Assembly: GCF_006345805.1 (NCBI RefSeq)
Contig: NC_042997.1
Span: 139,686,001 to 139,750,000 of the forward strand
Origin: Octopus sinensis
Taxonomy: Eukaryota
Reading direction: 5' to 3'
DNA: 64,000 nucleotides
Every line of letters begins with the position of its first letter. The stretch's first letter is position 1. Of this stretch, positions 7,201 to 33,000 are shown in pieces. Below the pieces are notes generated by a model that saw only the letters and a program-made list of their open reading frames with translations, did no database searches and was not told the origin of the DNA. The translations under genes were made by a program, and so were the position numbers.

Positions 7201-10200
7201 CCCCTACACACCCCTACAACATGACACATTCTTTCGCCATTAAATTCCTTTCTTGCCTTATCTTCTACTTCACCTCTGCAAGTGTGCCTTATTGATCTAG
7301 TGTGGGAACAAACTTACAGCAAACATGTTTACAGATAGCTCCTACATAAATCTGTTTCAAGTCATGCTGAGCCCGATATATTGCTGATCTACAAACTCTT
7401 TAGGCATATCTGAAGTTTTACTTTCATACAAAAGCCATAGAAAGTTCAATACATGGCAGTGTCCTTTTTTATATGTTTCCTGACCAACAAACAGAATTTG
7501 CTTCTACTGCTTTTCTGCCTCCATGAATACATAGTTATCTGAAAGATGAGCTAGCATTAACAGCATCAACTAATGTATGTGAGAGATGACTGTATGGGTA
7601 TGAATGTATAAGAGAATGAAGAATGTGTGCAGAATAAAAGGCGGCCCATGTGTTGTTGGTGGAGAAAAGCATTGGAAGTGGAGTAATCGAAACAGTAAAC
7701 TTCAAAGAAGTTGAATTGTTAAATGATGCAAAACAGATGAATTGTTCAATGATGCAGAACAAACTTTTCTGCCCATACTAACATGGAAAAATTGAGATTG
7801 TGACATAGTTTCTTGACAAATCTAAGTATAATAGGTAAAGCATTGATTTGCCAACATATTTTTCATGAATTCAGCATTATTGCATATGGAAAATTTAATT
7901 CTGTGTACCTCAGTTTGCTATGGTGTGATGAATAGATTCTAGATTTTCAGGGAATGTCACCTATGGTAAACTGAGATCATACTCAGAATATGATACATTT
8001 CTCACTTTATTTCTTCTTATTGTTTATTGTTGTTTTTTGGGAGAAGGTACACAAAACGCAACTCTTAGCAATAATTCCTTTTACTGGCAGAGTTTATATC
8101 ATGTTGAACTACTGTTTTTTTTTCTTTTTTTTTTTCATATATCAAAGTTAAGCAATATTGAACTTGCTATTATTTAGTTGAATAATTATTTAGAAAAACC
8201 CTAGTGATATGAACATCTTAATTCTAATTGAAATAAATGGTTGAGTGCATTTGGTATTGGACTACTTATCCTGAAGACTTGAGTTCATATCTGCTAGAAT
8301 ATTTTCTTGTGTATTTAAGCACTATACTAAATATTATACACCTCAATTCACTTAGCTTGTCAGGAAAAGATACCAGGTCACTTGGGAATGTTAAATGAAA
8401 CAGACTGATGTCTTTTCCAAAGGGATATTTGTTTCTTATTGCCATATCCTTAAAACCTCATCAGGACAAGAATGCTAAAGTTTTTACTATTTGTAAATGG
8501 CTTATCCATTGATAAAGAATCTAGAGCTAACTTCTGGTTCTAAATGTGCTTGTGTTTCAAAAGATATTTATCATTAAACAATATTATTTCATATTTTCAG
8601 AAAAAATAGTTAATCTATTTTTTTTTTTTATGTTTACTTTTATAACTCTTTTTCACTCCAGAGATCTTTCAGTAACTACTAGTGACCTTGAAGAGGAGCC
8701 TGCATTGGGGAGCGAATCAATAACTTCAGAAGAAATAGCTTCAAAAAAACTTAAAGGTTTATTTTTTTTTTCATCTGTCATTTACCTTACATCAATTTTT
8801 AGTTTCAGTTTTCATTTATTTTATAACAACTGTATATTGTATGAGTATTTTTATAAACAAATTTAAAAGTGCCAAGTGAGTTGGTATTTTGCAGAAAATA
8901 AAGTAAATCTTGTACACAGTATAGCTGTGAAAACAGCTTAGAAGATTGGGTAAATAATACCCTTAGAAGATAAAGCTACAGAGAGTCAAACCCTGTAGCT
9001 CTCAGATATTGTATGTAATTACTGTTGGATTGTCTTGATTGTGGGTGTATGGTCATGTGTAGTATTCTGGTGTTGCAATGAAGATGTTAAATGTGATGTC
9101 ATACAGAAACACTAACTATAGGTACTAACTTTGTAAAATCAAGACATCTCAGAAATGATGTTTTTTTTAATAATAATTTGAGTGATTACCTGGTACATTC
9201 CATGTTAGCATGGAACAGTCATGTTAAATGACAGTGATAAATTACTGAGAAAGGGAAGCTTAATGATATATGAATAGATTGTTAAATCTCATTTTGTTAT
9301 CTTATTATTATGAAGATCTCTTATTGCCTTCAGATCTGTAATTGTAATTACATCTTGTTCTCTTAATTCAGAATTCTTCATTCGGGTCTTTAGTTATTGC
9401 AATTGTACATAGCATTAGTTATACAAATGTCATTTGCATCTAAACTGTAGAATGATTTTTAGGCCTGCCTATTCTTGTACCATATAATTTCTAATTAGAT
9501 GTTTACTAGAATGCATAGAGTTAAATTACTAAGTAAAAAGCTCAGTCATGTAATGGTTGTTACAGAACAGAAATTAACAATAGACGAAGAGATTAGAGTC
9601 TTTCTCACTTATAGTTCTTTTTCTCCTTCAAAATGAATGTAATCAAGGTTAATACAATTCTTGTGATATGTGTTTCAAGATTGGCTGATAGATGCAGTCC
9701 TGTGCACTACCACGTCTGACAGGAAGTTAAGGGTTAAAAAAAAGGTTTTATGTTTCTAAATGCAATGAATATGTTATTACTCATTTATCTCAGTTTTGAG
9801 TGAAGCCCATACTTTTCATTTGAACTAGAGATGCTTTTAGGAGTCAACTCTGTTGCAAGTAACCAAATGTATTACATGATTGAAGGTCAATTGAGATTAG
9901 TGCACCATTCTCTTTGTCAAAAGGTACCAGTGGAAAAGACTTCTAAACAAAGGCTGAGAGCTGCTCTGTTATGTATTACGTATTTCTTTTCTTGTGATTG
10001 CTGTTTTTCCTCAGCAGATATAGACTCATTTCTGTTGAAGTAAGACAACATAAGACTATGATGGCCAATCTAAGGCCACTTTCACATTGACTAGTGCTGT
10101 AGTTAGCAACACTTTCACTTATAGGTCTTTTTGCCATCTGATGCAGCTACTTTTCTTATCTATGTTAAACTATAAACTATCATTTGTAATAATAATTCAT

Positions 10201-13200
10201 GAGATTAAACAGAAATTAAAAATTCACTTGTTTTAAAGGAAGGTTTGTTAAAATTTGATAAACTTAGGATTTAAAAACTTAGATTTCATAGGTAAAATAA
10301 TGAGGAATAAATGAGAATGTGCTGCTGTTACAATCCATCCACCTCTGCCTCAAGTTTTGTAACACTAATAAAATGTCTTCATTGTTATCAGATGTAGGCT
10401 TTCAGAAAAATTATTCAAAAGGGCTGAAGCGACCAAGAAGACAAATAACAGCAAAAGACATAGCAGATGGAGTGAAACAATCACAAGGTAAGTTAAGAAT
10501 ATTTTAAATTTCAACAAAGTAGTGTAAAGAAAAATACATCAGGGTAGCATTCTGCCCATCATCATCATCACCATTGTCATCATCATCTTATCATCAACTT
10601 TTCCATGCTTGCTTAATCAGACAAAGTTTGTTGAAGTGGATTTTCTAATGCTGGATGCTCTTTCTGTTACCAACCCTCCTCATCTGTTTCCAAATAAGAT
10701 AATATTTCTTCATGGCCAGACATGTTTTATGGAAGATTGGAAATGATTAACATTGTTTTAATGAAGTTTACACACATTTACGCCCATTACATGACATCAA
10801 AATAAGGGGGTGTGCGCACACACACATGTATATATGAAGGGCTTCTTTCAGTTTCTGTGTACCAAATTTACTCTCAAGGCTTTCGTCAACCTGGAGCTAC
10901 AGTAGAAAACACTTGCCCATGATGCTGTACAGTAGGATTTAACCTGAAAGTACATGGTTGGGAAGCAAGCTACTTAACCACACAGCCATGCCTACTAAAT
11001 ACACTGTAGAGTGTCACATATGTAATACAAAGAGTTGAAAAACTTTGGTCAACTGAACTTGTCCAAGTAATTAGTGGACAAAAACTCCCTCTTGAGATGT
11101 TTATGATCTAAAACAAGAAACAAGGGAAATAATTTACCTGCAATAAGATCAGTTAAAGGAAATTTTTAGACAATAGATAATGCACATTGGAATGGATCTG
11201 GTCATGTACTGAAAGCAATGAACATGTTTAAGTCTTATGTTTTCTTAACAAAGCATATTCTACTCAGTTAGCAACACAAATAGTTCATTCAGTCATTTTT
11301 ATGTCCATTTTTCCATGTTAGTGTGGTGGCAGTATAGAGAGGGGAAATATTCAATATACACAAGAAGAGTATTTTCTTTTCTGTAATGAGAAGCATGGCA
11401 CAGTGAGTAGAAGAAATGATGAGATGAGAGGGGATAGAATCGGCACAGTTGCTAGGAGAATGGATAGTAGAGAGGTGTGAGGGTATAGAATGGGCAATAG
11501 TGTGCACAAAATAGTAGGCACACGTACCCATATTAATGCAGTTTTCTGTCTTTTACACTGCACCTAATTATTCTTATACCCAGTTTGTCTCTCATTTCAT
11601 ATATGCTTTGTCATTTGTGCACACTAGTATGTTACATCCAACAAAGTTACTTACCTCATTTCTTTCCAGCATTCCACACCCAAAGCCCACATCTCACAGC
11701 ACACTTCACACATAAGCATCATACAGTCTGCCCTTGGCCTTGAGGAATAAACCCTAGCAGAAGAAATATCTTCCTGAACTTTTTTCCAGCCCATTCTTAT
11801 TCTAGCTATCACCCTTTCAGAACAACTTCCCTGACAGCTAATTTGATCACCTAGGTAATGAAAGCTGTTGACACCTTTTAGGGAATTGTTTGGATATTTG
11901 AGTGAAACTGTGTATTAAGTGCTCTTAGTACTTACTGCCCCTGCTGCATATGAAACTTACCTTCTTTGTTAACCTCTATATGTGTGTGCATGCATGCAGG
12001 TGTACTGTGTGGTAAGAAGTTTACTTCTCAACCACATGGTTTTGAATACAGTCCCAATATGTGGTACCTTGGGCAAGTGTCTTCTACTATAGCCCCAGAC
12101 TAATCAAAGCCTTGTGAGTGGATTTGGTGCAAGAGGTGTCCTTCAATTCTATTTTTCAAAACATGTCTGGTCATGGAGCAATATTACCTTCCTTGGAAAC
12201 AGGTGAAGGTTGGCAACAGGAAGGGCATCCGACTGTAGAAAATCTGTCTCAATAAATTCTATCCAACCCATGTGAGCATGGAAAAGTGGTTATTAAATGA
12301 TGATGATAATATATCTATCTATCTGTAAGCATGACCTTCAAACATTGGGCCTCACCGAGGCAATGACTAGTGACCGGGACCTCTGGAAATACGCTGTGCT
12401 TGAGAAGACTCGGCAAGCGCAAGTGAGACCATAACCTTGTGGCCTATGCCAGCGGTGTAACCAGTCCACTTATGCATGCCTTTCCTTCATTGGACACTAA
12501 ACTCTGCTTGCAAAGACCTGTTGAGGCAAGTGAAATCGAAATTAAATTCGATGACTGGCATCTATGCTAGTGGAGCGCTAAGAGTACCATACGAGTGAGA
12601 TCGTTGCCAGAGCAACAAGGTGGCCTCTGTGCCGATGGCACGTTAAAAACACCATTCGAGCGTCATCGTTACCTGCGTAACCTTATTAGCACTTGTACTG
12701 GTGGCACATGTAAAAACATTCGAGTGAGGTCGTTGCCAGTGCTGCTGGACTGGCTCCTGTGCAGGTGGCACATAAAAAGCACCATTTGAGCGTGGTCGTT
12801 GCCAGTACCACTTAACTGGCACATAAAAGCACCCACTACACTCTCGGAGTGGTTGGCGTTAGGAAGGGCATCCAGCTGTAGAAACTGCCAGATCAGATTG
12901 GAGTCTGGTACAGCCATCTGGTTTGCGAAACATCAATCAAATCGTCCACCCCATGCTAGCATGGAAAGTGGACGTTAAACGATGATGATGATATATATAT
13001 ATATATTGACAGGACACAGATAGTGTCTATAGCCAGCTGGAGGAGATATCTTCCTGGGGCTACAAACTACAGTAGCATCCACCCTTACGGGTTAGCCATA
13101 TTCAAATGGCAAATATGCAACACGATGTGTTACCACTACTGTTTATAACTCGCTCTGAGATTTATCATTGTTTGATTTCACTTTTTCAATATCAGTGTCA

Positions 13201-16200
13201 AATCGACACTGGAAAAAGTATATGTATTTGTGAAGGGATCTGACTTCTCATCGACAACCATGATTGTCACACGCTGATGAAAGGTAAACACCTTGAAACT
13301 CGGGTACGTGTGTATCGTGTTGAAGACGGGGAGGATGACTCCCCTTCACAAATACTGACAGGACACAGATAGTATGTCTATAGCCAGCTGGAGGAGATAT
13401 CTTCCTGGGGCTACAAACTACAGTAGCATCCACCCTTATGGGTTAGCCATATTCAAATGGCAAATATGCAACACGAGATATATATATATATATATATATG
13501 ATTACACACGCACACACTTTGGGTTGCCACACTGTTTCTCTCTAACAAATTTTACTTAGATTGGCCATCTCAAAGCTGTGGTAGAAGATACTTGCCCAAG
13601 GTGTCAAACCAGGATCCATATGGTTGCAAAGCAAACTTCTTAACTACACTGCCATACAGCTAAAACTATGTTATACCATAACCTTTCAACATTTCAAACT
13701 AGACATTAATCACTTCACCTGTTTATTACTATTCTCTAGAATAAAAAGCTCTTAAAAAAGAAGGTATAGCTACACTTCACATCTGAGATGCTTGAGTTTC
13801 AACTATGTCGGCATTGTAAAATAGACATGATAATACTGTAATTGATTTGATGTTTAAAATATTTTGTATTCAATCTCATTGTCAAAGGAATATTTGTTTT
13901 TACTAGATGCTGAAGAAGATGATGAAATTTCTCTTCATAAACCAAAAATAGTTATAAAAATTAGAAAGAAAATTACTGCAGAAGATCTTGCAATGGGTAT
14001 CAAACAATCACAAGGTAATTATTGACAGAAATCTTCATTGTATTGTAGTGAGTTTTATAAGATGTATGTATTAATGGTGGAGGCTGGTGGCTTAGTGTAT
14101 GGGATTCATGATTGTAAGATTGTGGTTTCGATTCTTGGACTGGGTGATGTGTTGTGTTATTAAGCAAAATGCTACATTTCATGTTTCTTCAGTTTGCTCG
14201 GCTGGTGAAAATGAGTAATCCTGTAACGGATCGGTATCTCGTTCGGGTGGAGAATATATATGCCATGGAGACTACCTTATGTGTCTACATGACTCTTTTT
14301 ATGTATTAATGAATTGTTTGGCCATTCTTAACCAGCTGGTCCCTGTTATTCAGCATAGTAGTTATTTAACCTTTAGCAAACTTCATTTTCTCTAGAATTG
14401 TTTCCCCTGCCACTGCCCTGTTACTACAGGGGAGAAAACTCATATAGTGACATGATGCTCCTACACTGTGCTAAAGGTTAAGATCTTGAAAAATAAGCAG
14501 TTTTAAAATTATTATTATTATCTAATTAATTTTATTTTATTCTTTTACTTGTTTCAGCTAGTGGACTGCAGTCATGTTAGGTTACTACTTTGAAAGGTTT
14601 TAATTGATCAAATCATCCCTAGTATTCTATCAGTCTCTTTTTGCTGGACTGCTAATACACGGAATAAATAAACCAATAACAGTAGTTAAATGGTGAGATA
14701 CACACACAAATGTTAAAGACAGGCTTCTATACAGTTTCCATCTATCAAATTCAATTGCCAGGCACTGGGCAACTCATGACTATAGTACAAGACACTTGCT
14801 CAACATGCCACATAATGGAATTGAACCTAAAACCCATGTGGTTGCAAAGTGAACTTCTTAACTGCATGGTCATGTGTGCATCTGTATTTATATTGATCTA
14901 TAGCACAGAAGTTTTATAGATTGTACTGCAAATTTAAATGATTTTGTATAATTGTTGCTAATTGTTTTTAAAATTTCAAATGCATAATCAATACAAGTAG
15001 CTTTCAAACCCTCTCAGTTCTATGTTATAATTGTTTCAAAGTTGACTCTTCATTTCCTCCCTTGCTTCCATTCCTGTAGAATCAATAAAATATTTACCAG
15101 TGATACACTGAGGGAATCAACACCCTATGTAATCTAATCTTCACTTTAGGAAATTATTTATCTCCACTTATTTGATCATATTGATGATAGTAAAATACAA
15201 TACATCTAATGCTGTGTTAGTTTTCACCATAATAATTATATCTGTCTAAATCATTTCGATGACTAGCGTCCGTGCTAGCGGGGTGCAAAGATCACCATAC
15301 GAGTGTGATCATTGACAGAGCGGCTATTTGAGTATGATCGTTACCAGCGTCGCCTTACTGGCACTTATGCCTGTGCTAATAGGGTGCCAAGAACACCATC
15401 CAAGCGTGATTGTTGCCAGAGCAGCCAACTGGCTTCTGTACCCGTGGCACGTAAAAGGGCACCATTTGAGCATGATCGTTACCAACGTTGCTTCACTGGC
15501 ATCTGTGCCAGTGGCACATGTAAAAAGATTCGAGCGAGGTCATTGCCAGTACCGCCTGACTGGCCCCCGTGCAGGTGGCACGTATAAAGCACCCACTACA
15601 CTCTCGGAGTGGTTGGCGTTAGGAAGGGCATCCAGCTGTAGCAACTCTGCCAGATCAAGACTGGAGATCAGAATACAGGACATTTTGTGACCAAAATAGA
15701 TTTACTAACCTAGTCTTCCAAGATCTCAACTCTTCTTTTAGAGGTGGAACCTTAAGAAACAATTTTGTCAAAAATAAGTATTCAGGCCATAATATGATAA
15801 AAGATGTTAGAAAGCTTTAGTATGTATTATGACAAATAATGACTCATTTTATTGTTAGCTCTTATTTAATCCTGATCATGTGTGGTCAGTACCAGTGACA
15901 CGTGAGAGGCACTTGTGCTGGTGATACATGAGAAGTACCCATGCTGGTGACACATGAGAGACACCTGTGCCGGTGACACGTGAGAGGCACCCGTGCCGGT
16001 GACACATGAGAGGCACCTATGTTGGTGACACATAAAAGTCACCCACTACACTCTATGGAGTGGTTGATGTTAGGAAGGGCATCCAGCCATAGAGACCAAG
16101 CCAAAACAGACTGGAGCCTGGTGCAGCTCTCCAGCTTACCAGTCAAACCATTTTATCCATGCCTACATGGAAAACAGGAAAACAGATACTAAACAATGAT

Positions 16201-19200
16201 GATGACGATGATAGTCCTTCACTTTAGGAAAGAGAATTTTCTCTTTATAAAAATTGTAGATTATTTGAAGATCAAGTTAATTAGAAAAGAAAGAGTTTAG
16301 TACAGGTGTATAACATGGCCATTAGGAGCAAGTCCAGTGCAGTGAAGTTTAGAAAACATCAAAATATCAGATTTATGGAAAAGTGGTAATTGTGCTGCAA
16401 GTGAATGGGTGCTGACTAATAACATTGTTAGAGGGTTGTTCTTATTTATATCTGGCCAGCTCTGATTTTTTTCTATCTATCTTTTAATCTGGATGAAAGT
16501 CAGTGTCATGATCTCCCATAGGGTTTCCAAGACAGGTGAGAGAGAGAAAGGTATTCTCAAACTGGAAACCTGATCCAAGAGCTGACAGCAAAGTAGATTC
16601 TGCTAAAGGCAGCAAAGGTACCTGGAGGTAACGTTAAACCAAGGGATGAATTAAATCTGTTTCCTAAAAGGCATTTCAACTTTGACTATCCTTATGGTTA
16701 TAGTAGGTACTTGAGCTAGTGATAGGCCAAAGAAGACTTTGTATAACAGACAAATCCAGTTCTTAAGAGCATCAGTAGGACTGGTTTGAAATGTCTTTAA
16801 TATCATTTACTTTTAGTTAGCACCCTTCAAATTCCCATCTTCATTAAAACTACATGACACTGAGGAATTCTAAGTGTTCTCTTGTTCTGTGCAGAAAATG
16901 AGGAAGGATTTTCTATTGATTTATATCCCTACAAGTTTGGTAGATAAAACCTATGTTTGTATGACACATTTCTTTTAAACAACAAAATTGCAAACGATTT
17001 TACTTCATTTCAGTTCTAAAAATTTCTAAGTATGGGAACCTTATTTTGCTTTTTACTGTTAAACTTTGGTATCGCATATTCATATTATCTAATGAAGCAA
17101 AAAATGTTACTATGCATTGTGTCTCTTCAGATTATATATGTACAGTTCTATGTTTCATTGCTGTTTTGGAATACTGCCTTCACTGAACAAAATGAACAGA
17201 GCATGTTCCAATGGATGTGTAATGTGAGCACATATGAAGGACTGATGTGCCACGAGGAAAAGTTGATACAAAAATATCAGTTATTGTGTAAGAGAGAAAA
17301 TTGTGCTGGTGTAGACATGTTATTTGTATGAAGGATTGCAGTTGAGCGATGAGGTGCCAAGTGGCCCAGATGGAAGTAACCTGTGAAAGAAGTGAAAAAA
17401 CTGAACCCAAGATGCTTAACCTCACAAAGGAGGTGATGAGAAACTAATAATAAAAGGTTTGAATCTTTGCTGGAGAAGGCATGTCCAAGACTTGGAAACA
17501 TGGAAAAACTGGCTTATACTGATGATGCTTCTCATAAAGTATTTAACAACTCATACTTGAGTCATAAGTAGTTTTAGAAAGAAATATCTACATAGAAAAA
17601 GAAATAAGCCAGCTGTATGCATGGAACCAAATTTGAAAACACACCCTACCCTTTCTAGTATGGAAAATAACCGTAAAAATATTTTATAGTGTCTTTGCTA
17701 TTCTTTTATATGTAAGGTATCTATTATTCATATATATTCTAATTTCTTTTTTCTATTTTGGTTCTAACTTTAGAAGCTGCAGCAGCTGCTGGGGCAAAAC
17801 CTACTGATATAACAGAAATGTCAACAAGTGACTCATCACTTGGATTTTTGACAGTGAATTCTGAAAATTTTCTGGATACCACAAATGTAGCAGATGAATC
17901 AGATTTGTCTGAGGATTCTTCCAACCATGGAAACAAGCAATCAAAATCAGATGCAGTACAATCAGAGAAAAACCCTCCGAATTCAAGTGAGAGAGAACAA
18001 ACACAGAAAATTGATGATGTTAATCGACTGTATTTAGAAGAAAGTTTGAAAATATTGCAGAATGCAAGCGGTAAACATACATCAACAGAAAATTTACAAG
18101 ATAAACCTGAGAAACCTAATAATTCTGTGATTTCTCAACCAAGAAAAAGTACCAGTATGACTGAGACAATACCAAGCTTCGAGCTAAGCCAACACACGAA
18201 AGATTTAACAAACCTTTCAGACTCAGAAAACACAGTTAAACATACTCCTCATGTCAATGTGGCTAACTCTTCTTCTTCTTCACTCAGCTTTCTTAAGAAA
18301 CTTACTGTGAGCCTTACTGATACCAACTGTAGTGGAGACCGGCAATCTATGACCGCATCAACTAAAGACTTCTTAAATTCTACTAAAAATATTAAAAGTA
18401 GAGATGATGCAGTATCAAGTGAAAATAAAGGGAATGAAAAGGACCGGTTCATCATCAGAGAAAATAAGGAGATTTCAGATTCACCATCTTCCTCTGATTC
18501 TGAATTTAAGACCTCTAGAAAAATTAGTTGCGCAAAAGACATTAAATCTAAGCAGGATGATGCTGTTATCTCTAGCAATAGGAATTCTGACAGGGAGGAT
18601 ATTACTGAAGAAAGACCATCTGAGTTAAAAGAGGTAACTGCTGATATAGGATCTTTGAAATTAAAAGAGAAATCTACAATTTGTGAAGAAACCAAAACCG
18701 GACAAAGTGATGTGGCAACTGATAAAGACACTTTCATTGAAGATCTTGCAGAAGTACCATTGGAAACTAAAGATGTAGAATATACAAGTGAATTCATCCA
18801 AACATTTTCCTTGGAAGAGACTGTTTCTTCAAATGTGAGTCAGAATAAAACTGATGAAAAAATTGAAGTGACTAACAAAAACGAAATGGTAGCTTGTACA
18901 CAGGAAAAGCAAAATATAGCAGACCAGCATGAGAGCAAGAACAATTATGGTAGAATGTTAGAGGGACAGATGGAACTGAATGAAGAACCTGTCAAAGATT
19001 TTGTTCCTGTAGACAACAATGTTGTTTTAGAGCTACAGGAAGAGATGGTTGTAATTGAGGATGAAAATGAAGTGATTGAAGTACAAGATGAACCAATTGT
19101 TGAAGTACTTGATGAAGAATATATAAGATTACATAACGAAGATCTCATAGGTATCAATCGAGAAGCAGCATGTGTTTATCAAACAGAAACTAAAGATACC

Positions 19201-22200
19201 AAAGACCTACAAAAGGAAATGACACTAAATGAAGACATTGAAAAGAAGCCCGATCATCATGCAGAAAAAATTACAGTAGATGTGCAAGATGACAAAATGA
19301 AACCTGAGAGAGAAACTAGAAAAGAAAAAGAACTAAGTAGTAATGTGGAAGAAATAGTAGTGTGTATAGATGAAGCAAGAAGGGAATCAAGGGTGGGTAA
19401 GAATTATGAAAATGTATTACAAGATAAAGTTGATGTGACTACAGATGAAAAGGAAATCAGTGTAACAAAGAGCAAAGTAGAGGTTAGTACAGCACAAGAT
19501 GAAGAGGACATTCCACTGTTTGAAGTTGAAAGCTTGTCAGAAGATGAAACCAGTGAAATTCCAGGTGAAGTTGACAAGAGCACGAAAGGGGAAAACAGGA
19601 GTATCAGTCAGAGTGAAGGTGATGCTAGCATGGTCCCTGATGAAGAAGAAGAAGAAGAAGAAGAAGAAGACATTCCATTGTTTGAAGTTGAAAGCTTGTC
19701 AGAAGTTGAAATCAGTAAAGTTTCAGGTGATGTTGACAGGAGTGCTAAAGGGGAAAACGCAAGTGACCACCAGTGTGAAGGTGACGCTAGCATGCCCCAT
19801 GTTAAAACCAACATTGGGTTAACTCTAGATAAGAGTGAGACTAAATCATTTCAGAATAAAGATGATATTGGCAAAATACAAGACAAAAGTGAGGATAATA
19901 TGGCCCCAAATAAAACTGAAATTGATATGATTCTGGTTGAAAGCAAGGCTGATGGAAAACAGAGCAACAAAACAGATGTAACTCAGGATGAAAGTGAAAT
20001 CTATCTCATCCAAAATGAAAGAAAAGCAAGCATGACCCAAAATAAGAGTGAACGTGGTGTAACTCAAGATGAAAGCAAGGCTTCTGTGATTCAAGATGAA
20101 ACTGAGGCTTGGGTGACCCAGGAAGAAAGCAAGGCTGATGAAACCCAAGATGAAAGTGAGGCTGATGTGGGCCAGAAAAAAGTGAGACTGGTGTGCCCCA
20201 GGATGGAAGTGAAGCTGGTGCATCCCAGGGTAAGAATGTGGATGGTGGATCCCAAATAGAAAGCGAGGATTATGTGTCAGAAATAGAAAGCAAGAACTCT
20301 GCATCCGAAGCTGAAAGTGAAGTTGCTGTAAGCCAGCACAAGCACAATCTTAGTGGAATTCAAGAAGAATTTGAGACTGGTGCAATTCAGAATGACAGCA
20401 AGATAAGCGTCACCCAAGATAGAAGCAAGTCTAGCATGATACAGCATGAAGTTGATGTGATATTAGAAGAAAGTGAAGCTGGTGAAATCCAGGAAGAAAG
20501 AGAGGTTGGTGAGACTCGGGAAGAAAGTGAGCATAGTGAATCTCAGGAAGAAAGCGAAGCTGGTAAGACCCAGGAAGAAAGCGAAGATGGTGAAACCCAG
20601 GAAGAAAGCGAAGATGGTGAAGCCCAGGAAGAAAGTGAGGCTGGTGAGATCCAGGAAGAAAGTGAGGCTGGTGAGACCCAGGAAGAAAGTGAGGCTGGTG
20701 AGACCCAGGAAGAAAGTGAGGCTGGTGAGACCCAGGAAGAAAGTGAGGCTGGTGAGACCCAAGAAGGAAGTGAAGCTGGTGAGTCTCAAGAAGAAAATGA
20801 AGCTGGTAAAACCCGGGAAGGAAACAAGACAGGCATAAAACAGGATAAGCCTGACTTCAGTGCATCTTCAGATAAAAACAAGATTATTTTGACACTTAAT
20901 AAAAGTGAAACCATGGCTGACCAGGAAAAAAATTTGACTCTAAACAGAGATAGAAAGAGCACTCAGGTCCAATATCCAGCCAATGTAATGCAAGATGAAG
21001 ACATGCCTGCTACAACTAATGATTTTGATTTTCGTAATGAAATCAAAAATGATGGCAGAGAAGAACAAGAATCTAATATCAAAGTAAAATCTGTAAGCAA
21101 GAATAAAAGTATTTCTAATGAAAGGGAACTGGCTGAAAATGAAATACAAGTAGATGATGAAATTATCTTTCGGCAAAACATTGAACACTCAAAGGAGGAT
21201 TACTTTAGAGGTAAAGAGAGCCAAACTACTCCTTCCCGTTCTTCTTTGCGACTAAGATCTTCTGTTGCTAATTCATCAGTCTCTCCAAAGTTTTCAAAGT
21301 CTCGGGATCTTAGCTTAAAACGTAGAGGAACAAAACGAAAATCAGTTAGTGACCATACAACAGAGGCTGCACAAGTATCCACTCATTCTGTTTCAGAGAA
21401 ACTAAGACGACGAAGCAGCAGAGAGACAAATTTAAGTAAAACCAGATCATATAGAATTATAGACACTTTGAGTGGAAGTGGAAACTCTATGACAATCAGT
21501 AATCAAGCTATAAGGCAATTTTCCCCGGATGTTGGGACAGTTCCAAATGAAAATCAACGTTTGCAGAAGACAGATCAACAAATATCAGGTTGGACATTTT
21601 TTTTTTTTTTTTTTTTTAACTTCCTTTATGGTTTTCATTACTGTGAATGTTTATATACTGGACCCATCTTGATTTGGTATTACTCATTCACTCTTCTGAG
21701 CTGAAAATAATAGGTGCCAATTCAGTTTCAAGAATTGCAAGTCAAAGAACTTGACTGTTAAAAGATTGGAAGTCTACTTTGACATACTCATTTCCATCAA
21801 GTCATATTAGGATGTTGAGAGGGATCTGTTGTTTCAGTTATTCATATCTTTCATGCCAGTTTCCTAAACTTACTTGCACATTGATATTAAAACACTCCTC
21901 TACCTTAAAAGACTATAGAGGAGGTTATGCTTTGGAGTTTCCTCTCCAAGGCAGAAGTTAGTATGGAGGGAAATACCATCTATATTGACATTTAGTCCCT
22001 TAAAGTTAACCTATTAGCATTCAAATTACTCTAATAAAAGGTAATGCTTATTTATTTATGAAATAATCATGCATTATCTCACAGCTTCAAGATTTCAATG
22101 ATTTATTTTAGAATAACATTATAGGGTAGGTGTGAGAGGCCAGATCTGGCCAGTTTGAACATAAAACGCGTAGAATATTTGGGTCAGATATGGCTAGTTT

Positions 22201-25200
22201 AAATGTTAAAGGGTTAAGGCTCCTGCAATTATCCTATTCTGATGTTTTAGAAACTGCTTCTGGCTTGAAGTTGGTTGACTTGCCATCTTCCTTTGGTGAT
22301 CTTTCTTATAGCACTAATAATATTAATTTTAACCATTATTTTACAGCTTTATTAACAATGAAATCTAGCTGTATCAATATTATGTTTAACACTTTTTTAA
22401 CTATTGACTACATTTTTATTCAGTAATTTTTCAATATAATCAGTATTTTGGAGGGGTTTAATAAAATATCTGTAACTTTATATATTGGCATATTATACTG
22501 GTGTTGATCAGCTGAAATCTTGTAGTATCATTCATATTATAATGCGATTTTGAGCAAGATTTTAATATGAACCCATTAGTACTCATTGAATTGAGATGGT
22601 TTGATATTAAAAAATTTCATTATTTTACCAGTCTTTTACAAAATATTTTAATATTAATGAGTAAAAGCTAGAGATTTAGAGCAAAGATTTAAATATCATA
22701 AATTTCTTTTTCCCCTTCCCAAAATATAAGGATTTTAGGTTTAGTAAAATAAACCAAAATTTGTAATAAACATGTTTAATTTATTTATCTTTTCAGCTGA
22801 ATCCAGCAAAATCTTGGAATCAACAGTAAGTCATTACTTTCCACATACTTTCATAAAATTAGTATCAGTTATAATCTGAGCTGTTTCAGCCAACAATGGA
22901 CTTGGACCATGGCTAATTTAATTTAGTATTATTTTATAAGGTAAACTCAGGACATAGAAGAATGGAACTAACTATACTCTTTACTCTTTTACTCTTTTAC
23001 TTGTTTCAGTCATTTGACTGTGGCCATGCTGGAGCACCGCCTTTGGTAAGGTATTTTATTCAATACTGAACCATTCCATTTTTATTAAAGACTGTAGCAA
23101 GTCTTGAAGTTATTTTTCAAACAAAAATATGTTAAAACAAAGAAAAAGTGACATAACACTACTTTTAATCATGTTTTGATTAGACAAATAACTTTTGAAA
23201 GGAAAGTTATAAAAATAAAATAATGTCACAAAATTAAAAATAAGCAAATAAAACTCTGTGAATTGGTGTACATGTGTGAAAGTAAGAAAATGGATATATT
23301 AAAAAAATAAATAAAAAGTTGTAATCACTGAAATAGTTTCACTTGTTCTGTTGACATTTTGTTTCAGTTAGAATGCTTTTACCTGCACATAAAAAAATTC
23401 CATTCTCCATTCTAGATCCAGCATAAGTCTCAACATCATTGTTCTTTGTTCAAATGTATTAAAGTTTTTAGAAAAATAATAGTTTCAGTATTTCTTGGCT
23501 AAGTTACTCTCAGAAACAAGCTTTTGTTTTGGATTTCATCCAGTCATCAACAAAAGCATTACCTGCAGATTCACTATTCTATTTATGAGATACATGAATG
23601 ATATAGCTGTGAATCATAAGGTTTTCAAAGTGGATAAAGTGGTGAGGAATATAATATAGTTAACAAACAGGCAGGTATTCACCAAAGCTCTGTTCTTTGT
23701 TTAACCTTTTAAGCCAGCATGGTTTCAGGATGTAGAACTTTGGGAAGTTTCTTTATGCCAATAATCTTATTCTCATCTTAGAAATCAAAGAATTTTAAAT
23801 TTAGGAGGCTTGATTGAGTCAGTCACTCAGTTAAGAAATTTTGAAAGGACTAATTAGGTAGAATCACAAAATCTAAGATGAAAAGACTTTGCTTAGTGTG
23901 TGGGACTGAAAGACAGAGGTACTTAATCATCAGAGCCTCAGTGGCCGCTATTCCAACCACCAGCAGTATATACAAATACCACAGCTGCTGTTTTACCGGC
24001 TGCCACATTGTACTGTTTACAAATACCCCAGCGGCTGCTATTCTGGCCGCCAGCTGCAGATACAAATACAAATTCCATCCACCAGCCACAGATGCAAATA
24101 CTCCAGCAGCCGCTTTACCGGCCAGTATTTGCTGCATTGGAAAACCAGTCAGTAACTACTGGCTTGACTGGCTCCACAAGCGCCAGTAGTGGAGATTAAA
24201 AAAAAAAAAAAGTGGTAAGGATAATGTTGCCCTTTATTTGGTATTTTATTTCGATATGAGAGACAGAAAACACATTTTAGTGATACTGAAATAATATTAG
24301 GCAAGAAATCATTTTATTTGCTCTTTTACCCAGAGAACATGAGGTGAGTTGTGTCAAGGACAACGGGAATCTGGTGTTCAAAGGGTTAATATTGAGCAAG
24401 AAACAAACAGTACAAGAGGTTGATGGAAAGCTGCAAGATTATTTATACAAATGAGTGTAGTAGAGATAATTGGTTTCTTGGAGACAGCAACATTGGCATT
24501 TTGTGAATGAATTTAAACAGCACTATTGACTCATACTATAATGAGAAAGCTTATCCAGAAAATTTTAATCCAGGAAGTTACTGTTGAAGAACATTAGGTT
24601 AGTAGCTTTGCTAGACAATTTTACTTTTGCTAAACCCTTTCATTACCGTATTTATTTTGAGATGCTCTGTGTTTCTTTCTATTAAATAAATACTAAATAT
24701 AACAAAGAATTTAGTAAAATAACATAGTTATCATTAAGCTGGTGTTAGGAACATAAATTATGACTAAGCTTTGGTGGAAGATTTTAATTCAAAACTTATG
24801 AAAACAAGACATTTGTACTACAGAGCCAGAGCCGGTTTCAGCTGGGTTGGTATCGGAAGGGTTAAAGGCAAGATACTAGTGAAATGTAATATAGACACCG
24901 TCAGTGAATTAATGAACATGTCACTGCAGGACGTTTATATCATCTATATATATAAAACTGTAGTTGTGTGAGTGTCTGTCCCCTTCGATTTAGATTCCTA
25001 ACTACTCCCACATTTTGCGGTGCAGTTTAACCAAATTCAGGTATCTTATAGTCGTGATTCATATCGAGCCCGTCTGAGTATTAGCGCGCGTCTACGATGA
25101 GTCTACGATTTTAAAAATAATTTAACATCATTTTTTATTCAATTTTAATGCATAATTTTTCGTGAGTCGATGGCGGCGAAGTTGGCGTCCATGGTCACAC

Positions 25201-28200
25201 CTGCACCTGTTTGCTTCTCCCCCTTCTTCCCTCCCTCGTGAAGCTGTGGGGAAGGGAGTGTAAGGAAATCAACGTCGTAAAGCGTTGTCAAGGAGACCAG
25301 CGTTCTTTTAGAACAACGACTTCATGGCTTGAAGACACCAAAACAGAAATGGCTAAGAAAGCCCGAATTGGCATCTATAAGGGAAGTAACTCTCTAAAAA
25401 TGCTTATATAGTTATTTCCCTTACAAACCTGAGCAACGCCGGGCGATACTGCTAGTAATCACTAAAAAGAAAAGTGCTTCTCTGTCTATCTATAAAACTT
25501 GGGTAGTAAATAGATAGGAGCTAATTTAGTTACTTATGTCAAAAGGTTGATTTATCTAGCACACGTATGTTCTTACCATTACTGCATTAGTTATTATTTT
25601 ACTATATTTATTGCTTGTTTAAATATTAGTTTTTGTTGCTGTAATTTCATTTTCAGTTCAGTTCATTGTTATTTTAATTTTTGTTTTAAATAGCGACCAA
25701 AGAAAAAATTAAAGGAAGCCAACCCAATGTAAGTTAACTATTAAGATACTATATTTCAAGTGAAGAGTTAGAAGTTTGTATCTTGTTACTGGTATCCCTG
25801 TGTCCTTAATAAGGTGCTTATCATCATCATCATCATCATTGTTTAACGTCTGCTTTCCATGCTAGTATGGGTTGGACGATTTGACTGAGGGCTGGCAAAC
25901 CAGATGGCTGCACCAGGCTCCAATCTTGATCTACAGCTGGATGTCCTTCCTAATGCCAACCACTCTGAGAGTGTATTGGGTGCTTTTACGTGCCACCGGC
26001 ACGGGGGCCAGTCAGGCGGTACTGGCAACGACCTCTCTCAAATGTTTTTCCACGTGCCACTGGCACAAGTGCCAGTAAGGCAACAATAATAACAATCACG
26101 CTCGAATGGTGCCTTTTACATGCCACCGGCACGGAAGCCAGTTAGCCGCTCTGGCAATGATCACACTCGGATGGTGCTCTTAGCACCCTACTAGCACGGG
26201 GCACAAGTGCCATAAAATAGAGATCAACTTGATGTGCTAATTAGATAGAATTATTGTTGTTGTTTAGCCCCCAGGTCAGACCTATGACCAAAGACATTCC
26301 TGCCATGAGAATCTCATTAATTCAGTGTTATAGGATCTTACATTCAAAGTGGGGAAATGATAATGTTAGACTGAATGCCTTTCTACATATATATTTTATA
26401 CATAAAAGTATTAGGTTATGTTGGGTAAAGAGGGGTTTTGAAAACCCATCATAAGTATTCAGTTCACTTGTAATCTTTCAAGTTATAAAAATATAGTATT
26501 TAATTTTGGTTTACAAGACCAATGTTTTATTTAAACTATTGTAATATTTATGATTATAAATAATTGTTTATAGGTTAGAAGATAGAAACTGAAAGAAGCC
26601 CATCATGTTTGTGTGCGTGTTTGTGTCAGTGTTTGTCCCCCCACCAACACTTGAGAACTGGTGCTGGTGTGCTTACATCCTCATAACTTAGCAATTCAGC
26701 AATAGAGACTGATAGAAGTACCAGGCTTAAAAATAAACATATAAGTAGTGGGGTTGATCCATTCTACTAAAAATTATTCAAGGTGGTGCTCCAGCATGGC
26801 TGCAGTCTAATGACTGAAACAAATAAAATATGAGGACAGCTGTATAAAGAAGTGCCAATCTCTATCTGTGGAGGGGACCTGTGAAAGAGGTAAACCCACA
26901 AAGACATGGGACGAGGTGGTGAAGTATGAACTTTGAAATGTTGGGCCTCATGGAGGTGACAAGTTACCAGGATCATTGGCGATGTGCTTGCTTGAGAAGA
27001 CGCATCAAGCTAGGTGAAATCATAGTCGTGGCTGATGCTGATGTCACACAACTGGCACCTGTGCCAATGGCACATAAAATGTACCCATTACACTCTTGGA
27101 GTGGTTGGCATTAGGAAAGGCATGAAGCTGTAGAAACCATGCCAAGTCAGACTGGAACTTGATGCAGCTCTCTGGCTTACCAATTCCAGTCAAGCTGTCT
27201 AACCCATGCCAGCATGGAAAGCATATACTAAATGATGATGATATATATAGCAAAAATAGAAGTTGAAAATGCACAGAGAATAGTTATTTTACTAAACTCT
27301 TCGTTATTTTCGAAATTAAATGAAACGAAAGTAGTGTTTTTCAACAGAAATATAGTCACAAAAGAGTTAAAGCTGCCAGCTTATTGTCAAATATGAGTAT
27401 CCTCTGTCTCCAATAAGGCTACTGCCACAACAGAGTCTGTTCTTCTGAAACTACTGACTTTATGTAACATCAATCTAAGCCTACTCTATGCACCAGCTTA
27501 GCAGGGGTGGATGCTCTGAGTGTAGCTGCTGGAATAAGAATAGCCTGAGCAAAGTTCAAAGAACTCCTACCTCTGCTGGTGATAAAGAGCCTCTTGCTCA
27601 GAGTAAAATATAGACTGTATGACGCATGTGTGCAAACAGCCATGCTACATGGCAGTGAAACATGGGCTGTGGCTGCTGAGAACATGTATAAGCTTTCAAG
27701 GAATGAAGCTAGTATACTCTGCTGGATGTGTAATGTCAGTGTGCGTACACAACAGAGTGTAAGCACCCTGAGACAAAAGTTGGGCATAAGAAGCATCAGA
27801 TGTGGTGTGCAAGAGAGACAACTGCGCTGGTATGATCATGTGTTGCGTTTGGATGAGGACAGCTGTGTGAAAAAGTGTCACACCCTAGCAGTAGAGGGAT
27901 CCTGTAGAAGTAGACCCAGGAAGACCTGGGGTGAGGTGGTGAAGCACAACCTTTGAACGTTGGGTCTCATGGAGGTGATGATAAGTGACTGAGACCTTTG
28001 GAGATATGTTGTGCTTGAGAAGACCCAGCAAGCCAAGTGAGACCGTAACCGTGGCCTATGCCAGTGCAGCATAACTGGCCCACTTAAGAGTACCCTTCAA
28101 TCATTGGGCAATAAACTGTGCTTGCGAAGACCTGTTGAGTTAAGTGAAGTCATTGTCATGGCCAGTGACAGTACTGTCTGATTGGCACCTGTGCTGGTGG

Positions 28201-29974
28201 ACCATAAAAAGCACCATTTGAGCACAGTCGATGCCAGTGCTGCCTGACTGGTCCCATGCCAGTGGCGCGTAAAAGGTGCCATTTGAGCATGGTCGTTGCC
28301 AGTGTCCTCTGACTGGCTCACATGCAGGTGGCATGTAAAAAGCACCATTAGAGCGTGGTCGATGCCAGTGCCAGCTGACTGGTCCTGTGCCAGTGGCATG
28401 TAAAAAGCACCATTTGAGCGTGGTTGTTGCCAGTGCTGCCTGACTGGCTCCCGTGCTGGTGGCATGTAAAAAGCAACATTAAAGCGTGCTCAATGCCAGT
28501 ACTGCCTGTGGCACGTAGAAGGCACCCACTACAATCTTGGAGTGGTTGACATTAGGAAGGGCATCCAGCTGTAGAAACTTTATCAGATCAGATTCGAGCC
28601 TGGTACAGCCATCTGGCTTGCCAGCCCTCAGCCAAACCGTCCAGATGGAAAGTGGACATTAAACAACGATGATGATGATTTTCAAATCCCTCACTGTATG
28701 TAGTTTTTACCCAATTTTTTGCTACTCAGATTAAATCCCTCTGGGCTTTTACATCCAACTATTAATCTTCTACAAATCGAGCAGAACTTGAATTTCATTT
28801 AATTTATCCATTTAGCCTAATAGTTTCTGTCAGTTTATAAAGAGTATGAAAAAGGGTTATGGGTACTGCTCCATCCACTTCAGACTAATAAATGAGACCC
28901 CTTTAAAGTTAAGATTATATAAAACTTTTTCCCTTTCGCTTATTTTCATTGTTTAACCCCAGGTCGACCATAATCCAGTCAATCTTATAATCAAAAGCAT
29001 TCTAGCCATGAAACATGTGTTTTAAATTACATTATCTAATATATATTTGCCTTGTTCATAATAATGGGGAAGGGGGGGGTGAGATTTTAGCTGCTGTTTC
29101 TAGCAGGTCATGTGACCTTGTAAAAGCCCCATTGTACATCTGTGTTTTTACTTGTAAAAGCACTGGTGTGTTTCTCTTTCCATGAGCGTTTTTTCTAGAA
29201 ATTCTTATAGAGTAGATTTATTCTATTATGGCTTTATTTATTTGTGTCTATTTTCTTTATTCAAATTATTATAGAGCAAGAAGAAAACATAAAGAGTATG
29301 TTGTATCTCCCCAAGTGACAGCTTCCTTACTCAGTCATTATTCAAAGATGCATTTTCCAACTTCCTGTAATGATGTATTAGGTTCAATGTAAGTCTACCA
29401 TTGACTCATTTTAAACAATTGTTGTTTTTTTGCTACTGAAATGCTTCACCACATTTATTGCACAACTTTGAAACTTATTCTATGCTAAGGGAAAAAAAGC
29501 CAGGTGTCTTCTCTGACTCCTTCCATCTTTTTTCCTTACATCAAAATCATAGAAGGAATGTGTTTGCCTGCTTATTTCACTCACAGCACAGCTTTGCATT
29601 ATTGACATATATTTCACTCCTGATTAAGGCTGTGTTAAATAAGATATATATAAATAATAAATGATATATATATATTGTTATATTTTGGAATGGTCATTTT
29701 GCCAGTTTAGCCAATAAAATTTATGCAGTTTGACCCTGCATAAATCCTAAATTTTATTTAAAAATTTATTGGAGCAAGTGTCTTTGAAGACTCTTATTGT
29801 CATTAAATGCTCGAAATGAGGAGTAGACAGTCGACAACTGAAGAGTCCTTTCTCTGTGTTAACTTCTCCTGTTTTCCACTTTTTTCCCTGTTTACGTATT
29901 TCACTCATTTTTCCATCATTTGTTTACATGTTTCATATTATTTGCACTGTTGATGACGTCCTGTACCCATATAT

Positions 29975-30031
<57 letters not shown>

Positions 30032-33000
30032 ATATATTATTTCTTATTTAATTGATATGACGCTTCCATTTCCAAGGATATATATATATGTATATATATA
30101 TAAATATATATATATTATTTATTATTTAATTGAATGCAATGCATCTATTTCTAAGTAAGTTTATCTTCACATTTTTGATGCCACTCTTTACTCTATACTG
30201 TTTTCTTCCTCCATCGTTCTCTAATTCCCTTTTTCTCCCTCTCCCTCCTTCACCATTTTCTATTTGTCTCTCTCTCTCTTGTTGCTCACACATGACCGTT
30301 ATCCGTCTTTCTTTTCCTCATGTGACATTCTTTCTTTTCCTGCATAGATGTTTAAATAAGCGGACATGTTTTTGTTTCTCTCTTCTATCTTTTCTCTTTT
30401 CAAAAAAAAATGTTTCTCCCAGCATTCACTATTTTCCTCTCCTTCTGGTCTAACGACCCTCCATGTTTGTTTTCATTCAGTTTCCTTCTATGTCTCCACT
30501 CATTTTTTTTGTTCCCAACTTTGACCCTCCATAAATCCTAAATTTTATTTAAAAATTTATGGGAGCAAGTGTCTTTGAAGACTCTTATTGTCATTAAATG
30601 CTGGAAATGAGGAGTAGACAGTCGACAACTGAAGGGTCCTTTCTCTGTGTTAACTTGTCCTGTTTTCCACTTTTTCCCCTGTTTACGTATTTCACTCATT
30701 TTTCCATCATTTGTTTACATGTTTCATATTATTTGCACTGTTGATGATGTCCTGTACCCATATATTGCATATATATATATTATTTATTATTTAATTGAAT
30801 ATGACGCATCCATTTCCAAGTATATATATATATATAAAGACTACAACATGGGAAATACATTTTATGAACACAGATGTTGATAATAATATGAATATAATGA
30901 ATTCATAATATAATAATATATATGCATTATCATTCAATTCCCAAGTGCAATTCATCTTAGTCCCAAAAATAATAATCTATTTGAGAATGAAACAATTGTA
31001 ACTACAAAATTAAAAAATAGTGCCATAAATTCTAGTCTTTGCTTTAATATATCCATACTTTGCAGCTAATATACTTGACCAAGAATTTCAACTTGTTTGT
31101 ATAGTTTTCTCCTTAAAAATAAAACATTTGCATGCATATAGTTTGTGTGTTTAAGTATATGCTTATATATATATGAACACACAGAAGCATGTATATGATG
31201 CAAACTGTAAAAACACAACAGATGATTGTGTCTATAATTTGAAGTCCAGCCTTGTCACATAGTATCACTGATTCCAGCTGACAATTACATTTAGATTAAA
31301 CATATCTGGAATACTCAGCCACTTACATACTATTTCAACAAACACCATTCAGTTGATTGAACAACTGAATACTCTTCATGGAGAAAACTAACAGATATAC
31401 ATGTTTAATAGATCTCCATCAGTTTCAATGTCCACCGCACTACAAAATTTGAATTTTATCAGTGATCTTGTAAATTTGACAAATGCAGTTTGAAATTGGT
31501 CATTCTTAGTTATTTCCTCATAGAAATATAACATTTGTGGTACCAAAACTGCATTTTATTTTAGTTAACCTTATGTAGTACATACTTTACTTAAGACTAA
31601 CAGTGTAAGATCTCTTTAGTTTTCCTTATCAAGTATATCTCGTTTAGCTTTACAATAACAATACTTGCTTTGTTTGATTGAGTAATTGGCACATGACCAT
31701 TTTGTTTTATTGGTCATAAGCTTTTAAAGGTTTGAGGAATCTGCAGTTTTCTCTGCCTTTAGCTAAACCTCTATAGTTGGCTTGTGTTGATTTCTCTGCC
31801 TTTAGCTAAACCTCTATAGTTGGCTTGTGTTGATTCCATTTGATATAGCAAATACTACTTATTAACATTCATACTCCTCTTGCATATGACACTGAAGTGA
31901 CATTATCTTACTTCTTCCACTGCCATTGGGAGCAAATGTAACATCATCATTACAGACATACATCTTCCAACATAAAAGCATTGTACAGTTTGTATTTTTG
32001 TATGTATGTCTACACTCACATATATACATAAAAATATTGTTTCTGTTCTTTTATAAACCATTATAATTCTCACACTTGCTTTTATTATCAATTAATTTTT
32101 TCACTTTTTCTATTTTTTCTTCAGATCCAATGATTATTTTGATAACTTATTTGCTACCCTGTCTTCATATTCTCGGAAACAAAGAAGATTAACGATCTGT
32201 CAGTCAGATGTAGAGCTCTATTTTCAAAAGTAACTCATTTTCCTTTCTCTTTTTACTTTTTGTTTTACATTCATTTCTTCATTAAGCAGAGGGATGTTTT
32301 TTAAACAGTATTTTTGGTATTTGCAGTACTTAACATCAAATAGAACAGGCATTTTAATAACAAGCTAACATGGTTATTGTGTTTGATTTTAAGTATTGCA
32401 CACAGCATTCTTGTGTGTGCAGTACTTAACTAGAGACTTTTGCAGGGTAGACTTCAGGGTCCAACATTCACAACTATATAACAAAACAGATTCTACTGTT
32501 GCTAAGCTTGATATGTTAAGGAAAGTCGAAGGTTTCATACATTGACCATGCCATACAAAGCCTTCCATGCAGTTGCCTTCTTCACTTTGAGTTTTTGTTT
32601 TGACATGTTGACTCATGACCCAAGTATTTGAAATCTTTGAATTTTGTCAGAGCAGTGCCTCCTGTGGTTATTAGAAGTGAATGGTCCAGGAGGATATTGT
32701 AGCAATGACGTTCATTTTCATGACATTTAACCAAAGGCCAGCTTGAAAGCTCCTGTACCTGCTCTATGCAGTTAAACAGCAGGCTGACATCTATGTAATC
32801 CATGTCTGTTTGGACTAGAGAAGGGAGTCATCTAGACCTGTTAGGTATGATTGTGAAGCTAAGCTTCTGCTGCCATCCATTGATGGCCTATCTAAGTGTG
32901 TAGACTAGAAAATAATGAAGATGATGATGGAGGAAAATGGCCTTTATTGTATTTAGGATCACTATATAAATGACAGTAGTTAGGTTTATTTGCCTGACTA

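Follow-up and report, generated by a model that had tools for sequence, protein, structure and literature searches.

A 3.8-kb middle exon of Octopus sinensis CENP-T probably encodes a lengthened and tolerated flexible linker

Results

Layout of the CENP-T locus

The DNA analysed here is a 64,000-nt stretch of the Octopus sinensis genome (NCBI RefSeq assembly GCF_006345805.1, contig NC_042997.1, positions 139,686,001 to 139,750,000 of the forward strand), referred to as the window and numbered from its first base. It carries twelve coding exons of the gene for CENP-T, including a giant one that is the main subject of this work (Table 1). In human CENP-T, a C-terminal histone fold is the anchor in centromeric chromatin, and N-terminal motifs recruit Ndc80 and Mis12 complexes after phosphorylation by CDK. 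The O. sinensis protein XP_036361120.1 (1541 aa) matches the window exon by exon with 100% identity; its exon 1 (aa 1-35) was not found within the window. The giant exon begins after the acceptor ...ctaactttag/AAGCTG at 17774 and ends at the donor ATATCAG/gttgga after 21588, and its splice sites and phases join it in frame to both neighbouring exons, the donor being in phase with the next acceptor. The 11 other coding exons in the window measure 87, 88, 112, 95, 96, 108, 29, 35, 114, 105 and 181 nt. Counterparts of the two microexons are found in Argonauta in the same order and position, as 30 and 33 nt of matched coding sequence (L003 19972-20001 and 20820-20852). A strong purine skew at 18-22 kb is consistent with coding on the forward strand. 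A run of 21 T lies at 21597-21617, starting 9 nt past the giant-exon donor.

With the translated giant exon as query, four proteins were found: CAI9716032.1 of O. vulgaris (1648 aa, 98% identity to the exon), which carries the UniRef name 'Centromere protein T'; XP_036361120.1 itself, named 'DNA repair protein RAD50-like' in RefSeq; XP_052826670.1 of O. bimaculoides (1532 aa), named 'CAP-Gly domain-containing linker protein 1' in RefSeq; and a partial protein of Argonauta hians (1488 aa). Both RefSeq names are wrong or misleading for a CENP-T gene. The O. vulgaris orthologue has two isoforms, of 1648 and 1669 aa, and both include the giant exon whole.

Table 1 Features of the CENP-T gene in the window
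Feature	Position	Strand	Content	Evidence
CENP-T coding exon, aa 36-64 of XP_036361120.1	2966..3052	+	second half of first Ndc80-type motif SPKSLLKQIAKI	exact protein match, splice sites
CENP-T coding exon, aa 65-93	4014..4101	+	second Ndc80-type motif TPKTLIQRFLDE	protein match, splice sites
CENP-T coding exon, aa 94-131	4670..4781	+		protein match, splice sites
CENP-T coding exon, aa 131-163	8662..8756	+		protein match, splice sites
CENP-T coding exon	10392..10487	+	copy 1 of repeated motif, RRQITAKDIADGVKQSQ	protein match, splice sites
CENP-T coding exon	13907..14014	+	copy 2 of repeated motif, RKKITAEDLAMGIKQSQ	protein match, splice sites
Giant linker exon, 3815 nt	17774..21588	+	~1271 codons allowing for 1-nt gap; acidic, predicted disordered, no Pfam domain	
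Predicted helix, exon aa 70-101	17986..18078	+	only confidently predicted helix in first 800 codons	mean pLDDT ~59, 81 and 66 over three 10-residue blocks
Most constrained part of exon	18775..19194	+	three Argonauta-conserved islands: VEYTSEFIQTFSL, VKDFVPVDNNVVLELQEEMVVIED, REAACVYQTETK	dN/dS ~0.32-0.36 for exon-alignment codons 301-600
162-nt tandem duplication	19496..19794	+	1.8 copies, 84% match; surrounds poly-Glu run GAA x 9.7 at 19642-19670	Tandem Repeats Finder
Degenerate 27-nt (9-aa) acidic repeats	20064..20291	+	frameshift site inside	Tandem Repeats Finder
344-nt segment skipped by XP_036361120.1	20137..20480	+	107 residues fewer than O. vulgaris; restores frame	
1-nt deletion relative to O. 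bimaculoides and O. vulgaris	20173..20175	+	frame switch point	
27-nt tandem repeat	20466..20820	+	13.1 copies, 85% match; EESEAGETQ units	Tandem Repeats Finder
Basic S/T-rich block, 82 residues	21225..21470	+	20 K/R, 6 D/E, 29 S/T; ends in LSKTRSYRIIDTL; holds TPSR, SPKF, KRRGT, KRKSV, RRRSS	
29-nt microexon	22797..22825	+		protein match, splice sites; Argonauta counterpart
35-nt microexon	25694..25728	+		protein match, splice sites; Argonauta counterpart
First histone-fold exon	29275..29388	+		protein match, Pfam and profile matches, splice sites
Second histone-fold exon	32125..32229	+		protein match, Pfam and profile matches, splice sites
Last coding exon	35773..35953	+	histone-fold extension, basic tail, TGA stop	protein match, profile match, splice sites

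Identification as CENP-T

Both ends of the protein identify the gene. Pfam CENP-T_C (PF15511) matches residues 1432-1511 of XP_036361120.1 at 28.4 bits against a cutoff of 28.1, and a second protein (P0001) at 28.2 bits. A profile built from three octopod C-termini was searched against PDB sequences, and matched chicken CENP-T (3b0c_T) with E=5.5e-9 over 92 columns and human CENP-T (7qoo_T) with E=2.1e-5; the sole match outside CENP-T was histone H2B (E=0.32). The same profile, run by exhaustive HMMER search on 1.84 billion representative proteins with E up to 1e-3, recovered 143 family representatives, in nearly all of which the fold lies at or near the C-terminal end. Relatives named by their source are mostly called CENP-T or CENPT (newt, snake, skate, shark, ray, coelacanth, chimaera, bowfin, the starfish Acanthaster, Lingula and Mya), and a few, such as Mytilus and Babylonia, are labelled only 'uncharacterized protein'. 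In a word-indexed protein search the C-terminal 154 aa gave a single match, a 168-aa O. bimaculoides model, and other CENP-Ts were reached only by HMMER.

At the N-terminus, a search with the pattern [ST]P[KR]xL located two putative Ndc80-recruiting motifs in octopus CENP-T, SPKSLLKQIAKI at aa 31 and TPKTLIQRFLDE at aa 82. The pattern occurs twice in the human protein, three times in Mytilus and once in newt; it has 1-3 copies in several of the relatives checked and none in Babylonia. The Ndc80/Spc24-25 binding sites of human CENP-T are T11 and T85, and its N-terminus recruits two Ndc80 complexes and one Mis12 complex (PMC5241120). A transcript-derived relative of 894 aa (P0006) holds N-terminal motifs, linker and fold within one open reading frame (ORF). 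Since the giant exon sits between the end that would recruit the outer kinetochore and the end that would anchor in chromatin, we regard it as encoding a linker. The literature search found no paper treating CENP-T together with cephalopods, and a broader mollusc query gave only irrelevant papers.

Composition and predicted disorder of the giant exon

The translated exon contains 23% D+E, 12% K+R and 20% S+T with few hydrophobic residues, giving a net charge of ~-146 over ~1271 residues. On the Uversky charge-hydropathy plot all 100-residue windows of the exon fall on the disordered side, and the histone fold on the folded side. AlphaFold2 gave a mean pLDDT of 34 for the first 800 exon residues (765 of 800 below 50), from a 4-sequence alignment with which low confidence is a weak sign of disorder. 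The exon product is probably disordered. Pfam detected no domain in the exon.

Several segments are repetitive (Table 1). The longest in-register run of 9-aa units comprises 10 units in O. sinensis, 9 in O. vulgaris and 11 in O. bimaculoides, and the poly-Glu run measures 9, 7 and 3 residues in the same species. A transposon or foreign-gene origin of the exon was considered and rejected: there is no Pfam domain and no second copy in the window, and both ends are homologous to a shorter, cephalopod-like linker. Antisense ORFs of 182, 152 and 108 aa within the exon were likewise rejected as genes, being by-products of the purine-rich repeats on the forward strand.

A preliminary description of the window, made from its letters, had named the gene as CENP-T, placed the giant exon at exactly these boundaries, given 29-181 nt for the other exons, and predicted an acidic, probably disordered linker closed by a basic, S/T-rich end with the five short strings listed in Table 1; all of this was borne out, the disorder at the level of prediction. 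It had read TPSR and SPKF as CDK-like sites and KRRGT, KRKSV and RRRSS as Aurora-like. The CDK-like sites are not conserved even among octopods, as TPSR is TPSC in O. bimaculoides and lost in Argonauta, and SPKF becomes SPKP and is then lost. Among the Aurora-like strings, KRKS persists in octopods, whereas RRRSS changes to RRRSR in O. bimaculoides and to LRQQSL in Argonauta.

A frame break in the O. sinensis assembly

Two forward-strand frames cover the interval, one at 17743-20256 (838 codons, start mod 3 = 1) and the other at 20166-21701 (512 codons, mod 3 = 0), and the 3815-nt exon is entered in one frame and left in another. The preliminary description had missed this break. The switch occurs in GGGCCAGAAAAAAGTGAG at 20169-20186, where O. 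bimaculoides reads GCCCAAGAAAAAAGT and the window, with one base fewer, GGCCAG-AAAAAAGT; in the wider alignment, ...GATGTGGCCCAAGAAAAAAGTGAGACT... of the O. bimaculoides DNA (L002) stands against ...GATGTGGGCCAG-AAAAAAGTGAGACT... of the window. As written, translation of the window from upstream would terminate at 20257-20259. If the G at 20175 is counted twice, for reading only, 1271 residues are obtained with no stop. In O. bimaculoides the homologous exon lies inside a single open stretch of 1312 codons, and in O. vulgaris the protein, which alone represents that species here, is continuous over the site (DVGQEKSETGVPQ).

XP_036361120.1 regains the frame by skipping 344 nt (Table 1). Neither GT-AG nor GC-AG is present at any of the four boundary placements able to give this protein, and the skip was apparently introduced to get past the 1-nt frameshift. 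The deleted base adjoins short homopolymers (CAG/A6), a typical place for long-read consensus errors, and the long-read assembly is most likely in error at this base. The earlier estimate of at least ~1620 aa for the protein agrees with the O. vulgaris isoforms, and would apply to the O. sinensis locus only if the missing base is such an error.

Evolution of the exon

Evolutionary rates were obtained from the comparison of O. sinensis with O. bimaculoides, which diverged ~34 Myr ago (PMC10700109). Nucleotide identity is 92.0% for the giant exon (3749 aligned nt) and 93.9% for introns (12,689 nt). Fourteen of the 15 indels in the exon are multiples of 3 (3-39 nt), compared with 22 of 75 (29%) in introns (binomial P=4e-7), and the only exception is the 1-nt gap at 20173. 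Because the indels stay in frame, the frame appears to be under selection and the exon translated. The Nei-Gojobori dN/dS is 0.62 for the giant exon (dN 0.061, dS 0.098) and 0.47 for the small N-terminal exons. In 150-codon windows it drops to 0.32-0.36 for codons 301-600 of the exon alignment and reaches 0.85-1.6 in several others. Judged by these rates, most of the exon sequence is weakly constrained and near neutral, which argues against a strong sequence-level function. An effect of the extra length on kinetochore span or material properties, as proposed in the preliminary description, is hypothetical.

Besides the three islands in the most constrained part (Table 1), Octopus and Argonauta share the first ~45 residues of the exon (DITEMSTSDSSLGFLTVNSEN...), EIIFRQNIEHSKEDY and the final SLKRRGTKRKS...LSKTRSYRIIDTL. 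The 894-aa relative, too, can be aligned with the ~45-residue start and with this final stretch. The basic block contains KRKS and SK(T/S)RSYR[IVM][IV]D, of which KRKS and SYR[IVM][IV]D are kept in Argonauta and in the 894-aa relative.

Length in the context of the family

For 113 apparently complete representatives among the 143 found, CENP-T has a median length of 767 aa, a 95th percentile of ~1007 and a maximum of 1614. Long members are Pleurodeles waltl (1614-1617 aa), Ahaetulla (1198 aa), Amblyraja (1057-1177 aa), Polypterus (1074 aa) and Mytilus galloprovincialis (1041 aa), followed by Babylonia areolata (936 aa), Mya arenaria (890 aa), Lingula anatina (623 aa) and Acanthaster (578 aa). 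The nearest non-octopod relatives are transcript-derived proteins of 894 and 926 aa, the former of which, as a query, matched only Logan transcript proteins. The octopus linker is roughly double that of the 894-aa relative. Net charge is negative at the family median too, and the octopus exon is exceeded in acidity by about a dozen representatives. The term giant, which the preliminary description had justified by the 561 aa of human CENP-T, stands in that the octopus protein is one of the two longest among the 143; the human comparison exaggerates, given the median and the 890-1041 aa of the named molluscs, and given the newt. In a comparison of linker length across cephalopods and other molluscs, suggested there as a check, the homologous Argonauta exon, a single ORF of 3057 nt followed by the two microexon counterparts, is also giant, and other molluscs have linkers about half as long. 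On the sequences compared, the giant exon is characteristic of octopods. It is about double the length of linker that is usual in molluscs, and ties with one salamander for the longest found.

Octopus CENP-T resembles human and chicken CENP-T (561 and ~640 aa; 7qoo_T and 3b0c_T) in its C-terminal histone fold with the CENP-T extension, a disordered net-acidic middle and a basic segment right before the fold, and resembles the human protein in having two N-terminal [ST]P[KR]xL motifs (T11 and T85 in human). It differs in the distance from the last Ndc80-type motif to the fold (~1430 residues, ~370 in human), in having nearly the whole linker within one 3.8-kb exon, in the lack of a recognized PxSVxR and in the duplication of an R[RK]xITAxD[IL]AxG[VI]KQSQ element. 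Pleurodeles waltl CENP-T (XP_069073697.1, 1617 aa; XP_069073698.1, 1614 aa) is nearly equal in total length and has its fold at the extreme C-terminus (1490-1606), one N-terminal TPRTIL and a long, acidic, repeat-bearing middle. However, it represents an independent vertebrate expansion, whose linker and ~75-residue repeats just before the fold are unrelated to those of octopus.

The other mollusc and lophotrochozoan CENP-Ts (Mytilus, Babylonia, Mya, Lingula and the 894- and 926-aa relatives) share the octopus architecture with linkers roughly half as long. The 894-aa relative has the N-terminal motifs and both the start (…SLGFLTVNSEN…) and the end (KRKS…SYR[IM]IDS) of the giant exon, but has neither the acidic 9-aa repeats nor the islands that octopods share in the centre of the exon. 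Bombyx mori CENP-T (~1016 aa; histone-fold construct, residues 889-1016) (PMC12678787) also has a long, largely disordered N-terminal part before its C-terminal fold. The Bombyx fold is monomeric and rearranged, while that of octopus aligns along its length with chicken CENP-T.

Copy number of the KQSQ motif

The motif R[RK]xITA[KE]D[IL]AxG[VI]KQSQ is present in two copies in Octopus, each in its own exon (10392-10487 and 13907-14014), and in five copies in Argonauta hians (L003 3494-3571, 4936-5052, 7196-7318, 11728-11841 and 14782-14904). Argonauta also carries copies of the giant exon's first ~40 codons as separate 114-nt exons. The motif is similar to vertebrate KKRRIxISxFERxVD, which lies 40-60 residues upstream of the Mis12-binding PxS[VI]x[RK]; newt seemingly has more than one copy of an element of this kind. 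With the copy number of the motif, the number of docking modules that each CENP-T offers to the outer kinetochore could vary as well.

Discussion

Taken together, we consider it very likely that positions 17774-21588 form a large coding exon in the middle of the O. sinensis CENP-T orthologue, and that this exon encodes an octopod-lengthened spacer, a tolerated expansion of a flexible tether. Small exons at 3-14 kb encode the N-terminal motifs, small exons at 29-36 kb the fold, and the giant exon the spacer between them. The spacer would have lengthened in the octopod lineage (3.06 kb in Argonauta, 3.8 kb in Octopus), part of the growth coming from tandem duplication of the 27-nt units, the 162-nt unit and the poly-Glu run. 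Selection would preserve translatability, with the sequence drifting almost neutrally except in a few islands and at the two ends. We infer that the added residues were tolerated and do not amount to a new functional module, although a few short elements among them are conserved. On this account octopus CENP-T, while extreme in length, is an ordinary representative of a family whose linker is known to vary.

A number of observations weigh against this account. The Pfam CENP-T_C score is barely over its threshold, and the AlphaFold2 run had the shallow alignment noted above. No canonical Mis12-binding motif (PxSVxR or PxS(V/I)x(R/K)) was found outside the Ndc80-type motif by pattern search of octopus CENP-T; this motif may have diverged or been lost. 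The O. bimaculoides RefSeq annotation has two genes, one with the N-terminal part and the giant exon and the other with the histone fold, and inclusion of the whole exon in mRNA is deduced from annotations and frame conservation. The blocks conserved between Octopus and Argonauta, along with the dN/dS of ~0.3 at codons 301-600, suggest that part of the linker is not mere spacer. The frameshift could also be real in the sequenced animal.

Of the other explanations, the most probable is that the doubled, charged linker was selected, for kinetochore reach, compliance or phase behaviour, or for new binding modules. Retention of the giant size in both Argonauta and Octopus, the strictly kept frame, the shared islands with the constrained codons 301-600, and the one predicted helix (pLDDT ~80) speak for it, as does the stretching of vertebrate CENP-T, whose N- and C-termini separate under spindle tension in cells (PMC3082190). 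By simple arithmetic, 1271 fully stretched residues would span ~450-480 nm, compared with ~140 nm for the human linker. We nevertheless think such selection unlikely, as substitution in most of the exon is neutral or nearly so, with nucleotide identity below that of introns, repeat slippage has altered the length even across a species split dated to 2.5 Myr ago (PMC10700109), linkers of very different length occur in the family with no known functional correlate, and an unrelated newt is equally large. A more far-reaching version is that octopods remodelled the CENP-T tether: the polyanionic 1270-residue linker would give a larger or more compliant span, the islands (the helix at aa 70-101, VEYTSEFIQTFSL and the VVLELQEEMVVIED block) would be new docking sites, and the multiplied R[RK]xITAxDLAxGIKQSQ modules (two in Octopus, five in Argonauta) would bring more outer-kinetochore complexes to each CENP-T. 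This we hold to be rather improbable.

Two further alternatives question the gene model itself. If the frameshift is real in O. sinensis, the product would be truncated and lack the histone fold, or the mRNA would lack 344 nt as in RefSeq. The deletion is indeed present in the assembly as read, and XP_036361120.1 does drop 20137-20480 with the frame restored, but the dropped segment has no canonical boundary at any of its four placements, the gap is alone among the 15 exon indels in having a length not divisible by 3 and adjoins homopolymers of the kind at which long-read consensus errors typically arise, the frame continues across the site both in O. bimaculoides and in O. vulgaris (a split put at 2.5 Myr ago), and loss of the histone fold would leave CENP-T unable to anchor at centromeres, as is established for the family. 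A real frameshift is therefore very unlikely. Lower still is our estimate for a giant exon that belongs to a separate transcript or gene ending in the next intron, with the histone fold expressed alone; this we find scarcely credible. It is how O. bimaculoides is annotated, XP_052826670.1 (L002 10001-28604) running from the exon into the intron before it stops and the fold being placed on its own 168-aa model, XP_052825112.1 (L002 35226-38604), and the T run after the donor in the window would fit such an end. However, giant exon and fold belong to one model in O. sinensis, in Argonauta and in both O. vulgaris isoforms, the donor at 21588 is in phase with the next acceptor, the 894- and 926-aa transcript-assembled relatives hold motifs, linker and fold in one ORF, and N-terminal motifs of the CENP-T type have no known role without a centromere anchor.

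Octopus CENP-T is a natural extreme of linker length, one of the two longest among the representatives found, together with the newt. The octopus linker could be used to ask, by comparison between species, whether the length of the tether matters, and Pleurodeles waltl would be a useful natural counterpart in such a study. Length variation in the disordered region of CENP-T is already familiar, and the evolutionary signal favours tolerance over function. The practical value lies in annotation, namely the probable 1-nt assembly error at ~20173-20175, the 107 residues skipped via a non-canonical 'intron', the wrong RefSeq names and the split O. bimaculoides gene.

Other features of the window

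Beyond the CENP-T gene, the window contains two more ORFs, at 39175-39747 on the reverse strand (190 aa) and at 56006-56461 on the forward strand (151 aa), neither of which has a match in Pfam. The latter lies just beyond a GC-richer bin at 54-56 kb (GC 0.45). Within the CENP-T gene, positions 173-824 and ~1367-2020 of the window both align to the same stretch of O. bimaculoides (L002 11043-11718), and thus represent a ~650-nt duplication within the intron that precedes the exon at 2966.

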